From Bugula neritina (Eukaryota; Animalia; Bryozoa): a DNA stretch of 64,000 nt. The DNA lies in the NCBI GenBank assembly GCA_964035545.1, contig OZ037767.1, positions 18,692,259 through 18,756,258 of the forward strand, read 5' to 3'. Of this stretch, positions 973-64,000 are shown one piece after another. Position numbers and translations under genes: made by a program. The number at the start of each line of letters is the position of its first letter. Position 1 is the first letter of the stretch. The notes below the pieces were generated by a model that ran no database searches, was not told the DNA's origin, and worked only from the letters and a program-made list of their open reading frames with translations.

Positions 973-1734
973 TTAGATGGTAGTTGTGATCTCCTTCATC
1001 TTATCATTACATGCATCTTCATCACAATGACATCTAAGGTGTTCAATTCCATCATTAACAAATGGATTCACTATTTTCTCACAATCATCTGCCTCTAAGT
1101 TGGCTGGGGCAAAACTGCATCCTCTGTGATAGGTTGTGGTGTCTCCATTTACTTCTAAAAGTTGGTAAAAAAGGTAGAATGTGTATAAATAATAATTTTT
1201 CTCTAGTGAACTTAGGGTGATTTTAAAATCTTTGTTCAATTTATAATTACAAAGATGTTATATACTATGTTGTTTTTAAAACAATCTTAACATGATAGCA
1301 AAAATAAATTTTGTTGTAAATAAATTTACCAATATTGCATATTATAAATGCAATGTTGACAATTATTTTATATAATAATTAATACAGGCTTTAATTTTCC
1401 TAGAATTTATTTAATGATAATAAGGTGAAAGGTTATAAAAGAAGCTACTAGAATTACCTTCAGTGATGTAGCAGGCAGTCAAGTAGCTAGCACAATCTGA
1501 CAGATCATCTTCATTAGCTTCAGCTGCACAGTCAGTACATTGGTAACACTTGATGGCGTTTGTGCTTGCAAGAGTTGCTGTAAAAATCAATAAATTACCA
1601 CAATAATAATTTTCAGCCAAAGTAAAATATTTTTTGTCTACTGATGATATAATAAAAATTTAAAATAAGAAATTGTATATAAAAATGATAATAAACTTAC
1701 CAACAAAGAGAGCGAGTAGAAGTAGCTTGTTCAT
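973..1734 (-). CDS. Secreted Ly6/uPAR (three-finger) domain protein, copy A, 111 aa, 3 exons
   Basis: Exons 1734-1701, 1577-1458, 1154-973 with GT/AG boundaries, phase 1/1. Protein MNKLLLLALFVATLASTNA|IKCYQCTDCAAEANEDDLSDCASYLTACYITEEVNGDTTTYHRGCSFAPANLEADDCEKIVNPFVNDGIEHLRCHCDEDACNDKMKEITTTI: signal peptide, 10 Cys in LU pattern (CYQC...RGC...CxC...CN), no hydrophobic GPI tail. Confidence 0.9.
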
Positions 1735-1764
1735 CTTGTCTAGTATTCTGTAGAATGTCTTCTC

Positions 1765-1852
1765 AGTGAATGATAATATTCTGTCTCTCACCAACTTATA
1801 TACTGATTCACTCTGCACACAGTTCCTTTAGAAGTCATCTTGTTATGTAACC
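1765..1852 (-). promoter_or_regulatory. Core promoter of Ly6 copy A (TATA + Inr, AP-1-like and D-box motifs)
   Basis: TATATAA at 1802-1796 is 31 nt upstream of a TCATTC initiator (1773-1768); TGAATCA next to the TATA; TTATGTAA at 1843-1850; same block precedes copies B, C and D. Confidence 0.65.
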
Positions 1853-4789
1853 AACTTTCAATATAAACACATGTATATGATATAGTGTATGTATATGAAA
1901 CCAGCGGGACGATCAAGCTCTTTTATGGTTTAGCAGCGTTTATTCACTAATCTAAGTGATAAAAGCTTTGAAATAATATAATGCATCCTCTATTGTAGCC
2001 AATTTTGAGTGTGGGGGTTTCTTTGATCTTGTATATGTTAATTTAGCAAACTATACCATCTTTTAAGTATATAATTGACTATTCTAAGTAACTCTATTAT
2101 ATTAGGCTCAGCTATTAGTTTATGCATTTAAAAAAATCAATAGATAAATTAATACTAAATTGAGGAAACAGGCAGCATAGAGGTTATATTATAGTGCTGA
2201 CTTAGTAAACAAAGGTTAAGTGTTTGGATCCTCATCTTAAAAGGAAAACAATTATTGCTCCTTTAAGACACAATATTGAAATTAGGAAGCCTTAGCCAGT
2301 CTAATTTTTTTTATTAAAGGTCCTCGTAGTGTTTGTGTTACAATCACCCACTTGCACAACTCGTTGTTGTTATTGTTGTTTACTATAACTTGTTTGTAAC
2401 AACAGGATATTGCAACAGGAAGTAACATCCCTTGATATTGTTTCATAATAATGTATGATTGTACACCACCTATATATAAATGGTTTAGTTTATAGAATAA
2501 AACAGTTTATGTTATAACAGTACTGCTGTGTGTTGTGTCAACTGTAATAGAACCATGTGCATTGTATATAACGGAAATAATATATATACAAAATACATAT
2601 ATAAAAGTGCTGGAACAGAAAACCCTATGATAAACTTCTTCCAGTAGATAAGTTATTATGAAGCTTTATTTGCACCAATTAACAGATAATGCATGTGTAT
2701 GTGTGGTATTTTATTGCATGTGTAATGCAGATAATATTTAACCCAGAATGTCTGTTAGCTACAGAAATCTGTCAAAGCTGTGTATATAGGTATACATATA
2801 ATATATATAATACTTCAACACATTTTCTGATGCCAGCGCATTACATATTTTCTTTTAGCAATTTTTTGTTTAAATTGAAATGATGAGCAGCAAAACTTGA
2901 CCAAACATTCTTCCATTATTATGTAACCAAACTATTACATAACAAGTTAGTTTTAGCTACATTTTCTAGAGCAATTGGCTATTTGAGGCATCAATATCTA
3001 ATGTATAAGTGCCCTGTAAGCCTATATAAAATATGAAAGTATATCTGTATTATATTAGCAATTTTAATCTACAAAAACTAAATTATAAATTGGAAACACA
3101 CAATGACTTTAAATGCTAAATGCACTCAAAACTAAACTTGAATTTGATAGGAGTTGTTATCACCAACTATAATAATGGTTTATCTATATAATCTTAGGAT
3201 GACTGTCTCAGCAAGATATAAAGTTAAAACAACTTCATAAAGCTGTTCTTTAGATCTTGGTAGCTCAAACTCTGAATCACATGATCAAATATCCTGTTAT
3301 ACATCCCTTTGAAAATTTATTATATTAACACTTATCACTGTACCCTGATATAGCACTTGTCTACTATACTACCAAGTTTTAGTACAAAGCTCGTAATGCT
3401 ATATGATCATATATCATGGTACAACATTTATAAAGTATACTTACCAGTATTCCAATATATACACTGCAATATATGGCGTGTTAATATTATACTGTATTGA
3501 TGTTTTCTTTTAATCATTTGCAAAAACGAAGATAAGTCAGTCTGTATGCATATTAACTGATGAAATCATCTTGAATTGCCCTGTATTAGTATAAACTATT
3601 TAGATTATACTTTTTTATATTTCAAAAGATTTTAATTGGCAAAACTCTACAAGTCAAGTCAAACTTCTTTTGGAACACATTTTCTTCAAATATGAAAATC
3701 ATACTGCATTGCGTTGTCTCACCCGTCTGCCTTGCTCTATGTATTCAGTAAGATTTAAAATATTAGTAAAAATTATAATAGTTATATCAAGCATAATAAA
3801 CTTTTTAACAAATTTGCATTTTAGGGTAGAATTCATTTATTAATTGAAAATACAATTATCTCACTTGCTATAGAGCACATAACAAAACTAAGTATATATG
3901 GTTGCCATAGAAAAGATCTCTGATATGTTATCACCGTTATATTATCACAATATATTGTCAGAGATGCAAAAAATGAAGTAAAAGTTTTAGTTTTGTGTCT
4001 ATTATAGTCACATTGATACAAAGGTTTTATAGAAGTACACAACAATATTGATAGATTCTCATGTTATTCATTGTAATTACTGTCAGGAAATATTTTGAAT
4101 TTTATTCTTTTCCCTTATTAAAATAAGATGTTTCTATAGGCGGTTACTGCCAGATACTATAAACTAGTGTTAAAGCTCAATATAGTTTAGGCAAAATAAA
4201 GTATGTAGTATATCCATAAATAAATTCTCAATATTTTATCGTCAACGTGGTTCATAATTATAGCTATAACTCATCAATTGAAATGTTGTAAAATTGGATA
4301 GCTTCGTCAATATACGGTACTAGGTGCCATATATTATAGACACCATGTGTGCAATGAATACATCTATATAAAAACATACAGGCTACCATAAATACAGTTT
4401 TTAACAGATAAATAATTGACAAAATATTTAGCTAACGCTTAAATAGAGATTGTAATAAAACTTGAATGTAAATTTTGCTACTGTAAATGCTAATCTATAT
4501 CAATTTGACCATTTCTATGATTAACAATTTTTATGCTTCTAAAATCTTTTTTAAACCGATTAGGTACAGGCAGAAATTTACCAAGCATAGTAGATTGTTT
4601 ATTAAAAATTATTTCAACTAACAAAGTCTCACTTGTGGCAATTAATCACATCACCAAATCTCATTTATTACTATAGTCTATGCTTTGTGTATATAATCTA
4701 TTGTTTAAAGGCATATACAAAGAGTTTGCCACTATGACTTGATAAGTTTGTGTCATATCTTAAAATTTCATAACTCATGGTAATGAGCC

Positions 4790-62004: not shown

Positions 62005-63784
62005 TTATTCATTGGTCTGGTTAAGTAAAGGAGATACTGCAGTTTCTTCATCACTACCATCATCATCATGGCTTTCATCTACACACATAAGCAACATACT
62101 CTGCATTAAAATTAAATATGTTTTTGAATAAGTATTTCGAAATGCCTAGAATTTTATGAAAGTACATAAATTATTTCTATTTTTATCCAAAAATATTGAC
62201 TTTAACAAAAAGATAACCAAATAGCAAAATCTAAAAGAAAACACGCAACTAGAAAAACTCCTATCGTGTAATTTCGTAGAATTTTAAATATTATTAACAA
62301 ATATTTTTTTATTTTTTATGCACTAAATATAAATTAAAATTTTACTATGTCAATTACTGAGACACACACAAAGTTAACCCATAAAGGTAATCTTTGTATT
62401 GAGAAGCCATGCCTGATGGAAAACGTGGGATTTACTATTTTTTCAACTTATTTTAGCCAATAACAAAAATTAAAAAAAATCCACAGTTGTGGTTTCTCGA
62501 AAACTTTTTCCAACATTATATGAGAACACATAACATAATATACTTGACTAGGACTGAGCAATGTAACATTGCATAACATAATTTCTCAATATATTTGCTA
62601 TGCTAAGAAAAAATCAAAAGCTCTTAACAAAAATTGAAGAAAAGCATTTAAATTTTTTGATTATATCAAAATCCCTCTATGTGCTAACCAATTGCTCAAT
62701 CTAAAATGTAATAAATAAATAAATAAAATAAAATAAATAAATATTATGATTAAGTAGAGTAACTGAAAATTAAACCTCTTAATTTTTGACTTTTGTATGA
62801 ATATACATTATTAACTTTAGTAAGGCTTTTCCAATCTTATACTGGAAAAGCTGTAAATGTTCAACATTGGCTACATACCACCCTCTGTTGAAGGAGGCAC
62901 AGCAGTTGTGTCATTAACTGTGCTAATTGCTGAAAGGGATTCAGGTACTGGAGTCGATGAACTTTCGGCCTGAGTCATTGGACTTTGATTGGCATTGTTA
63001 ACTTCAAGCAAACATGATGGCATTTCACTGGATGTATTTTGATAACATAAAGGAGTTTTCTCATCTTCTGAACTTTCACTAACACAGAGATCAACTTCAT
63101 TACTTGTTCTAGATCTATTACCAGGTAGTATATTTCTAAATCTCCCAGACCCAGAAATCACATCAAGTTGCAGATCACCAGATAAACTGTTTGAAGGTGG
63201 AGGACTTGGTTTTTGTGCCTGGTCTGAATCTTGTGATTGAGTCGGATCTGGTGTCTGGGCTGGATCTGGTGTTTGGGCTGGGTCTGATGTCTGGGCTGAA
63301 TCTGATGTCTGGGCTGGATCTGATGTCTGGGCTGGGTCTGATGTCTGGGCTGGATCTGGTGTCTGGGCTTGATCTGGTGTCTGGGCTAGAACTGATGTCT
63401 GGGCTGGATCTGATGTCTTGGCTGGATCTGGTGTCTGAGCTGGATCTGGTGTCTGGACTGGATCTGGTGTCTGGGCTGGATCTGGTGTCTGGACTGGATC
63501 TGGTGTCTGGGCTGGATCTGATGTCTGGGCTGGATCTGATGTCTTGGCTGGATCTGGTGTCTGAGCTAGATCTGATGTCTGGGCTGGATCTGATGTCTGG
63601 GCTGGATCTGGTGTCTGAGCTGGATCTGATGTCTGGGCTGGATATGATGTCTGGGCTGGATTTGATGTCTGAGCTGGATCTGATGTCTGGGCTGGATCTG
63701 ATGTCTGGGCTGAAACTGATGTCTGGGCTGAAACTGATGTCTGGGCTGAAACTGATGTCTGAGCTGGATCTAGTGTCTGGACCT
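62005..63784 (-). CDS. Grindelwald-like TNF receptor copy 3, last two exons (5' part beyond window end)
   Basis: Exon 63784-62879 (homologous to 52105-51542; open in the frame VQTLDPAQTS...[12 protein letters not shown]...PVPES...PPSTEG) and exon 62078-62005 (DESHDDDGSDEETAVSPLLNQTNE*). The copy-2-equivalent stop lies at 61950-61948. Confidence 0.75.
63240..63779 (-). repeat. Coding 18-bp minisatellite, about 30 units (CAG ACA TCA/CCA GAT CCA GCC = QT[S/P]DPA)
   Basis: Directly visible; 540 nt without indels. Confidence 0.95.
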
Positions 63785-63889
63785 CTAAAGATATAGTTGA
63801 TATCTTTAATTACATACATTTATGTATGGTGACTCCAGAAGTAAGTGTTGCTTACATGGTAGTCTTTATGTTTCAATTCCAGTTGCCAA

Positions 63890-63966
63890 TTATATATATA
63901 TATATATATATATATATATATATATATATATATATATATATATATATATATATATATATATATATA
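63890..63966. repeat. (TA)n microsatellite
   Basis: Directly visible. Confidence 0.95.
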
Positions 63967-64000
63967 GTAAAATGAGTGTTTATAAAACGTTACTTGAGTG

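Follow-up and report, generated by a model that had tools for sequence, protein, structure and literature searches.

Does the interleaving of a TNF-type ligand gene with candidate TNF receptor genes reflect a working ligand-receptor module, or some other history of the region? The question arises from a stretch of 64,000 nucleotides on chromosome 3 (C3) of Bugula neritina (assembly tzBugNeri2.1), here referred to as the window, which a sequence-only reading had described as an unusually tight linkage of one ligand with several receptors. Inside it lie a single intact TNF-type ligand gene and two single-Cys-rich-domain (CRD) receptor genes that are likewise intact. A third receptor gene reaches in with its tail only, and there is also a receptor remnant, together with three intact secreted Ly6 genes, broken Ly6 copies, and a TIR pseudogene. 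In all gene models, splicing was inferred from the sequence and from paralogs. The features are as follows.

973 to 1734, minus strand: Ly6a, intact, 3 exons, 111 aa, 10 Cys
6291 to 7052, minus strand: Ly6b, intact, differing from Ly6a by one residue
10587 to 11745, minus strand: Ly6c, intact, protein identical to Ly6b
16400 to 20963, minus strand: R1, candidate receptor, 9 exons, 422 aa, CRD exon at 20050-19857
23735 to 25106, minus strand: GC-rich retroelement-like fragment, interrupting exon 1 of the receptor remnant
25112 to 28323, minus strand: receptor remnant, duplicating the region upstream of R1/R2 (25121-28323) and exon 1 (ATG at 25142), which the retroelement-like insert cuts after the first ~10 codons
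29840 to 31641, plus strand: broken Ly6 copy, frameshifted in exon 2, and an additional duplicate of the last exon at 31459
33098 to 40212, minus strand: TNF-type ligand, six GT-AG exons (40212-40030, 37906-37825, 37636-37574, 35304-35174, 34095-33928, and 33217-33098), open 248-aa frame under predicted splicing
44820 to 45850, minus strand: TIR_2 pseudogene, three broken exons with stops and a frameshift (TIR_2 E 0.18)
45868 to 46349, minus strand: decayed, LINE-like reverse-transcriptase fragment (RVT_1 E 0.11), immediately upstream of the TIR remnant
47226 to 47408, minus strand: orphan Ly6 last exon, diverged (80% identity)
50827 to 55252, minus strand: R2, candidate receptor, 7 exons, 467 aa, an intact R1 paralog with a CRD 89% identical
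61948 to 63784, minus strand: R3 tail, the only two exons of this gene inside the window

The predicted ligand has a type II membrane topology, with a single hydrophobic segment near the N terminus (residues 18 to 36), an RQKR furin site at residue 70, and, after a stalk, a C-terminal TNF-like domain from residue ~93 to 248. Its only two cysteines (186 and 205) are invariant in seven paralogs; by analogy, we place them in strands E and F, where Eiger, APRIL, TALL1, and TWEAK carry two cysteines (PMC8024323). A profile of ligand exon 4 searched against the PDB had Eiger as its top match (E 0.074), with GITRL, APRIL, and moth Eiger also among the 25 matches, of which 8 were TNF ligands and none was C1q; profiles of exons 5 and 6 gave no match. 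The domain is split over four exons, and in exon-by-exon Pfam searches no TNF or TNFR family passed the cut-off, the exon of one ligand paralog matching Pfam TNF (PF00229) at E 0.11, below that cut-off, when exons were searched singly. A genome scan with PF00229 returned two matches, both spurious because they contain stops. An ESM Atlas feature search with exon 4 produced no usable match, and exon 5 modeled alone does not fold (pLDDT 47). The earlier claim of a TNF-family ligand at this position is borne out, as TNF-type, by the open six-exon frame, the topology, and the furin site; this architecture and the weak Eiger, GITRL, and APRIL matches tentatively point to its identity.

R1 and R2 are predicted type I membrane proteins with a signal peptide, eight extracellular cysteines, an S/T stalk, a TM helix, and a low-complexity tail. 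In the 250-aa tail of R1 we saw no death domain and no clear TRAF motif, while the R2 tail has two PxQxxD matches and the R3 tail, through an 18-bp minisatellite, has 17. The R3 tail is 18 residues shorter, owing to an in-frame TAA that lies 18 codons ahead of the position equivalent to the R2 end. The CRD exon of R3 lies at C3:18,757,315, 1 kb beyond the window end, and its signal, CRD, and TM exons extend outside the window up to C3:18,761,755. Of the three paralogous receptors and a remnant previously assigned to the window, R1, R2, and the remnant are therefore present as described, and R3 has only its tail there.

Within the CRD, the C2 module (C-x3-C-x12-C-x3-C) is invariant in 19 aligned rows except for one short loop, and the predicted model (E30-33, E38-41, H42-46, H54-62) is a helix-loop-helix after a beta-hairpin. 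Upstream of this module lie three cysteines at wider spacing than in Grindelwald, and the Grindelwald X2 module, which has two intercalated disulfides and the signature CxxCxxxC, is absent, Tyr or Phe replacing the first Cys of that signature in 19 of 19 rows. Grnd was the top match in two PDB fold searches of the CRD, followed by TACI, Fn14, and BCMA, and a molluscan TACI/BCMA cluster was top in an Atlas fold search; all of these scores were weak (Foldseek E 1.8, VIA Z 3.0, TM 0.50). The CRD had no Pfam match, an ESM Atlas feature search with its exon gave no usable match, and the best matches of its profile among PDB sequences were plant hairpinins (E 0.22). Homolog searches, limited by a length window, returned only short Bugula fragments and were uninformative on full-length kin, and the single 12-residue match in a metagenome scan was due to chance. 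The label "Grindelwald-like" is thus partly supported: the modeled fold suggests Grindelwald, TACI, and BCMA, on weak scores, but the Grindelwald cysteine signature is missing, and the receptors would be Grindelwald-like in fold only.

The Ly6 proteins are predicted secreted, Quiver-like three-finger proteins with a signal peptide and no GPI tail; their 10 cysteines have three-finger spacing, ending C-x-C-x4-C-N, and the last exon matches Pfam QVR at E 8.6e-4, below the cut-off. Where three intact and several broken three-finger genes had been noted, we count three intact genes, one frameshifted copy, and two orphan last exons. Near-identical Ly6 exons occur on C4 and C7 as well. The TIR remnant was likewise recognized correctly: its three broken pieces contain no intact domain, and at C3:18.802 Mb there is a paralog that scores above the TIR_2 cut-off (E 1.1e-6). 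Upstream of that paralog, a CUB-like exon and TM had no Pfam match. Nor did the retroelement-like fragment beside the receptor remnant, which is 71% similar to an element at C3:18.648-18.652 Mb that has a frame of 1372 codons.

The gene cluster itself is confirmed and is larger than the window. Over 225 kb (C3:18.60-18.83 Mb), four TNF-type genes, one of them broken (at C3:18.619, 18.627, 18.727, and 18.79 Mb), are interleaved with 9 of the 17 single-CRD receptor genes in the genome, a stronger linkage than had been claimed. Six of the 10 ligands genome-wide are on C7, where classical multi-CRD TNFR genes lie 0.4 Mb from this second ligand cluster, and the other eight receptors lie elsewhere. 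Unrelated GNAT and TPMT genes flank the cluster edges. Birth-and-death duplication, also proposed earlier, is supported. The block at 33-46 kb has a duplicate at window-relative 88-111 kb; one of the two has a broken ligand gene, the other a broken TIR gene. A haplotig assembly artefact was ruled out because intron similarity between the two TNF blocks is only 70-76% and the near-identical Ly6 copies outnumber what two haplotypes permit. By a rough, post hoc estimate, the chance of ligand-receptor proximity this close is ~1.1%. Receptor trees were poorly resolved, and monophyly of the receptors in the C3 cluster was neither supported nor rejected (p-AU 0.088). In Watersipora, no ligand and no second receptor lie within 10 kb of the homolog, which is a weak test.

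We think it somewhat probable that TNF-superfamily ligands and single-CRD TNF receptors are mixed at the C3 locus in one tandem array, which works as an ordinary cytokine module. What the sequences show is the anatomy of the genes, their copy numbers and positions, purifying selection, and block duplication. From what is known of the family, the type II ligand would trimerize and be shed at the furin site, three receptor CRDs would bind the trimer, and the clustered death-domain-less tails would recruit TRAF-type adaptors, as happens with Eiger and Grindelwald or with BAFF/APRIL and BCMA/TACI, driving stress, defense, or cell-death responses. One ligand gene and one receptor gene may have become neighbors once, after which unequal crossing-over would have multiplied both and carried the Ly6 and TIR genes along; given such a shared origin and co-multiplication, the linked ligands and receptors would, at least in part, be cognate and co-inherited. 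The ligand type (E/F cysteine pair) matches the receptor type (a single CRD with the Grnd and TACI/Fn14/BCMA fold ranking), and the number of linked genes, the low dN/dS values, the block duplication, the ~1.1% estimate, and the C7 TNFR genes also count for the module. Linkage is not required, because six ligands are on C7 and eight receptors lie elsewhere. Against the module stand the uniformly weak fold scores, the lack of any Pfam TNF or TNFR family over the cut-off, R1 without a clear TRAF motif, the poorly resolved trees, and the 10-kb neighborhood of the Watersipora homolog. Doubtful, in our judgment, is the wider proposal that, in bryozoans, genes for TNF ligands and their cognate single-CRD receptors stay interleaved as modules that duplicate and evolve together (here on C3, possibly also on C7 as ligands near classical TNFRs), phylum-wide despite genome scrambling, for use in colony-level defense, zooid turnover, or inter-colony recognition.

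The ligand might instead be some different jelly-roll protein, for instance a C1q-like one, or an unrelated disulfide hairpin domain might be what the receptors carry. Such an error would fit the failure of every match to pass a family cut-off, the plant hairpinins heading the CRD profile search, and the unfolded exon 5; however, the exon-4 matches include TNF ligands and no C1q, one paralog matches Pfam TNF, the ligand has a type II topology and a furin site, and atypical TNFR CRDs were top in all three independent fold searches, and we judge misidentification very unlikely. Possible, though on the unlikely side, is that these are real TNF and TNFR members sharing only a neighborhood, a duplication-prone, repeat-rich region having gathered fast-turnover defense families whose linked members are not preferential partners and whose linkage is functionless. 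Retroelement fragments occur throughout the region, Ly6 exons recur on C4 and C7, many ligands and receptors (6 of 10 and 8 of 17) lie elsewhere, and the genes at the edges are unrelated. Gene order in bryozoans is heavily scrambled (PMC11789643), so that chance neighbors arise, and in human, ligand genes lie no nearer to their receptor genes than expected by chance, with none of ~265 pairs within 0.2 Mb (PMC1309615). Yet the alternation of ligands and receptors extends to both sides across 225 kb, with a rough chance of proximity of 1%, and this alternation, together with deep divergence of the CRD paralogs (29-45% identical), argues that the neighborhood is old.

An allorecognition or self/non-self locus, in which haplotype-matched ligand and receptor alleles decide between colony fusion and rejection, would suit a colonial host, the tight linkage, and a second haplotype up to 7-8% different over parts of R1. 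The dN/dS values of 0.0-0.3, far below 1, indicate purifying selection on the ligand (0.09), CRD (0.14-0.29), and Ly6 (0-0.08), comparison with a sibling Bugula giving 0.09 and 0.20, and therefore argue against it. Among the variants listed for the second R1 haplotype of one individual, amino-acid changes fall in the signal peptide, stalk, and tail, and the only CRD variant is synonymous. Moreover, B. neritina is highly heterozygous across the genome (PMC7576161), and no Ig-like Alr or fuhc-type gene was seen. We consider this earlier suggestion highly unlikely. Human MHC class III places TNF, LTA, and LTB near LY6G genes, and TNF-type and LU-fold genes are adjacent here as at human 6p21; we know of no receptors interleaved in the human region. 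The resemblance appears superficial, and a proto-MHC class III relic extremely improbable: the Ly6 genes are recent, near-identical duplicates of the protostome Quiver-like type, the ligand belongs to a different TNF subgroup (two-Cys, Eiger/EDA type), GNAT and TPMT form the flanks, no shared framework gene was seen among the long frames of 264 kb, and bryozoans have lost ancestral linkage groups (PMC11789643).

What stands out about the locus is its tight linkage, an arrangement of putative ligand-receptor pairs that is rarely seen in animals; ligand and receptor genes are in general not close neighbors. The interleaved array is a natural experiment on whether linkage allows a ligand and its receptor to duplicate and diverge jointly, with a pairing matrix of 4 by 9 for linked genes and 10 by 17 overall. 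It also adds a rewired variant of the single-CRD receptor and describes TNF signaling genes from a phylum in which little is known of immunity and colony recognition.

Flies have one ligand and one Grnd, unlinked, whereas Bugula has 10 ligands and 17 receptors, partly interleaved. The Eiger-Grindelwald pair (PDB 6ZSY, 6ZT0; PMC8024323) is similar in its type II ligand with a single E-F cysteine pair and in its receptor with one CRD, eight cysteines in total, and a beta-hairpin followed by a C-x3-C...C-x3-C helix-loop-helix (C2). The C2 spacing is C-x3-C-x11-C-x3-C in Grindelwald and C-x3-C-x12-C-x3-C in Bugula, where the N-terminal half of the CRD is longer (C-x11-C-x13-C), Tyr or Phe stands for the first Cys of CxxCxxxC, and the eighth Cys follows the C2 module. 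Grnd-like single-CRD receptors are already known from annelids and molluscs, in a study whose Results report no ligand-receptor linkage and do not name bryozoans among the phyla (bioRxiv 10.1101/2024.07.27.603686). As presented there, Lophotrochozoa show a comparable lineage-specific expansion of both the ligands and the single-CRD receptors (12 in Capitella), but the receptors described carry CxxCxxxC and those of Bugula do not. BAFF, APRIL, and TWEAK with BCMA, TACI, BAFF-R, and Fn14 likewise combine furin-shed ligands bearing an E-F disulfide with small single-CRD receptors without a death domain, of which TACI, BCMA, and Fn14 surfaced in the CRD fold searches; unlike that group, R1 and R2 lack the D-x-L hairpin motif, have long repeat-rich tails, and are encoded by genes mixed among those of the ligands.

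The interleaved cluster of TNF-type ligand and receptor genes on chromosome 3 (C3) is real and extends past the window at C3:18,692,259-18,756,258 to span C3:18.60-18.83 Mb, in the following order.

C3:18.605 Mb: receptor, first in the cluster
C3:18.606 Mb: GNAT-like gene, between this receptor and ligand A
C3:18.619 Mb: ligand A
C3:18.627 Mb: ligand B
C3:18.633-18.668 Mb: four receptors, after ligand B
C3:18.676-18.704 Mb: Ly6 (secreted three-finger) array, then receptor R1
Window 25.1-28.3 kb: receptor remnant with a duplicated upstream region; exon 1 interrupted by a retroelement-like insert; then Ly6 remnants
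C3:18.727 Mb (window 40212-33098, minus strand): TNF-type ligand gene, six GT-AG exons, open 248-aa frame; then a TIR pseudogene, R2 and R3
C3:18.78-18.795 Mb: broken ligand, TGA in exon 4
C3:18.802 Mb: TIR paralog, after the broken ligand
C3:18.827 Mb: last receptor
C3:18.830 Mb: TPMT frame after this receptor, cluster edge
C3:18.835 Mb: glycosyltransferase-2-like frame, cluster edge

Usable synteny anchors at the cluster edges are the GNAT-like, TPMT and glycosyltransferase-2-like frames. With exon-intron structures taken from predicted splicing, the gene models of the sequence-only reading were borne out: an open ligand frame, intact R1 and R2, the receptor remnant, a Ly6 set (three intact genes, one frameshifted copy and two orphan exons) and a TIR_2 pseudogene. 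Both R1 (422 aa) and R2 (467 aa) have the layout of a type I membrane protein: eight extracellular cysteines, a stalk, a transmembrane (TM) helix and a low-complexity tail. Of the three receptors claimed for the window, these two lie there intact, but R3 has only its tail exons inside and its cysteine-rich domain (CRD) 1 kb outside; a TAA removes its final 18 residues. A TM-like exon follows the CRD in all six additional cluster receptors. A long perfect inverted repeat lies between (TA)n tracts in the R3 intron, within the first 300 bases past window position 64000, and intron 1 of the ligand gene is filled by 2 kb of (TA)n/(AC)n microsatellite (window 37936-39914). A second copy of the ligand-TIR block (window 33-46 kb) lies 70 kb away (C3:18.78-18.803 Mb), and the two have decayed reciprocally, the ligand being intact and the TIR gene broken in the window copy, and the ligand broken and the TIR gene apparently open in the other. 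Three TIR exons of the paralog (C3:18,802,000-18,806,200) look open, with CUB-like and TM-like exons 3-4 kb upstream, so that it may encode a CUB-TM-TIR receptor; a Pfam search with the CUB-like piece gave no match.

Searched singly, no ligand exon scored above any family cut-off. A profile of exon 4 retrieved Drosophila Eiger as its top PDB match (E 0.074); its 25 matches, all weak, also include GITRL, APRIL and moth Eiger but no C1q. One ligand paralog exon matched Pfam TNF below cut-off (E 0.11). The protein has a TM segment at 18-36 followed by a stalk, an RQKR furin site at 70 and two cysteines (186 and 205) that are invariant among paralogs and, placed by analogy, occupy the position of the E-F disulfide present in Eiger, TALL1, APRIL and TWEAK (PMC8024323). 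Given the weak profile matches, cysteine pair, type II topology and furin site, it is very likely an Eiger/EDA/BAFF-type TNF ligand.

In an alignment of 19 CRD exons, seven cysteines are invariant and the eighth is encoded by the next exon. The CRD model (pLDDT 74) forms a beta-hairpin followed by a helix-loop-helix. Three fold searches, each with a weak score, agree in ranking TNFR-type CRDs first, and the identification is drawn from this agreement: the Grindelwald ectodomain ranked first in Foldseek (E 1.8, with TACI and Fn14 lower) and VIA-align (Z 3.0, with BCMA fourth), and a molluscan cluster annotated TACI/BCMA ranked first in Atlas (TM 0.50). Since the C2 module matches that of Grindelwald, but a matching X2 module and the CxxCxxxC signature are absent, we place the receptors outside the Grindelwald family as defined, as a variant that would work like Grindelwald/BCMA/TACI. 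PxQxxD, a TRAF-binding consensus, occurs 17 times in the R3 tail, twice in R2 and not in R1. An 18-bp coding minisatellite in R3 (30 copies, window 63244-63780) yields many PxQxxD/PxQxS matches, and R2 carries a short, decayed form of it; because R1 has no match and those of R2 and R3 come from the minisatellite, we infer TRAF recruitment only tentatively.

The assembly (tzBugNeri2.1, GCA_964035545.1) comprises 216,009,554 bases, 32.42 Mb of them in chromosome 3, OZ037767.1 (PMC11480708). It holds at least 17 single-CRD receptor exons, 9 of them in the cluster. Ligand genes number at least 10, with 4 in the cluster and 6 at C7:1.85-1.92 Mb. The eight other receptor exons (C3:25.09-25.11, C3:31.18, C9:6.62, C4:18.59 and C7:7.09 Mb) include a recent tandem triplet. 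Classical multi-CRD receptor (TNFR_c6) exons lie at C7:1.41-1.44 and C5:7.33 Mb; the six-ligand array is ~0.4 Mb from two such loci on C7, possibly a second, looser linkage. With clusters counted as single loci, a uniform placement model applied post hoc gave a chance of ~1.1% that any of the six receptor loci lies 100 kb or less from either of the two ligand loci, and ~1.8% for classical receptors within 500 kb of ligand loci. On other chromosomes, at C4:16.55, C4:16.62 and C7:6.84 Mb, there are Ly6 last exons that share 93-95% identity with the window copies, suggesting recent dispersal.

We consider it somewhat better than an even bet that the cluster is a TNF ligand/single-CRD receptor signaling module whose neighboring ligand and receptor genes were multiplied together by tandem duplication. 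Ligand trimers, shed or membrane bound, would engage three single-CRD receptors, whose tails, lacking a death domain, would recruit TRAF-type adaptors for defense, stress or cell turnover. The anatomy, copy number, interleaving, constraint and block duplication are observed; how the ligand folds, its binding to the receptors, the pathway downstream and whatever part the Ly6 and TIR neighbors play are inferred. The main competitor, a duplication-prone neighborhood shared by ligands and receptors that have no preferential pairing, is a good deal less probable but serious. Misidentification of the ligand or receptors is improbable.

The suggestion of an allorecognition locus does not fare well against the selection data, and we regard it as slightly less probable again. 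Bugula contigs from JGI, probably of a cryptic sibling type, are 85-87% alike to the window over introns; the other near outside sequence is a Watersipora subatra protein. Ligand exons 5-6 had a dN/dS of 0.09 against the sibling contigs, and the R3 CRD had 0.20; in paralog comparisons the values were 0.14-0.29 (CRDs), 0.23 (the two ligands) and 0-0.08 (Ly6), all from small codon counts. B. neritina is highly heterozygous in general (PMC7576161), and a second haplotype, in contigs probably from the assembly's own run, differs by up to 7-8% over parts of R1; among the changes listed, the amino acid replacements fall in the signal peptide, stalk and tail, and the one in the CRD is silent. Judged by these sequences, the cluster genes are conserved and functional rather than hypervariable, and this argues against allorecognition. 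A proto-MHC relic is the least credible reading, and very improbable.

Around the Watersipora homolog, no ligand was found within 10 kb, a range too short to decide on conserved linkage. The individual parts are of known kinds; Grindelwald-like receptors, together with their expansion, are already reported from annelids and molluscs in a preprint (bioRxiv 10.1101/2024.07.27.603686). A limited literature search found no published report of tight TNF ligand/TNF receptor interleaving, and in humans ligand and receptor genes are rarely closely linked (PMC1309615). What stands out in Bugula is this tight physical interleaving of the two gene types.
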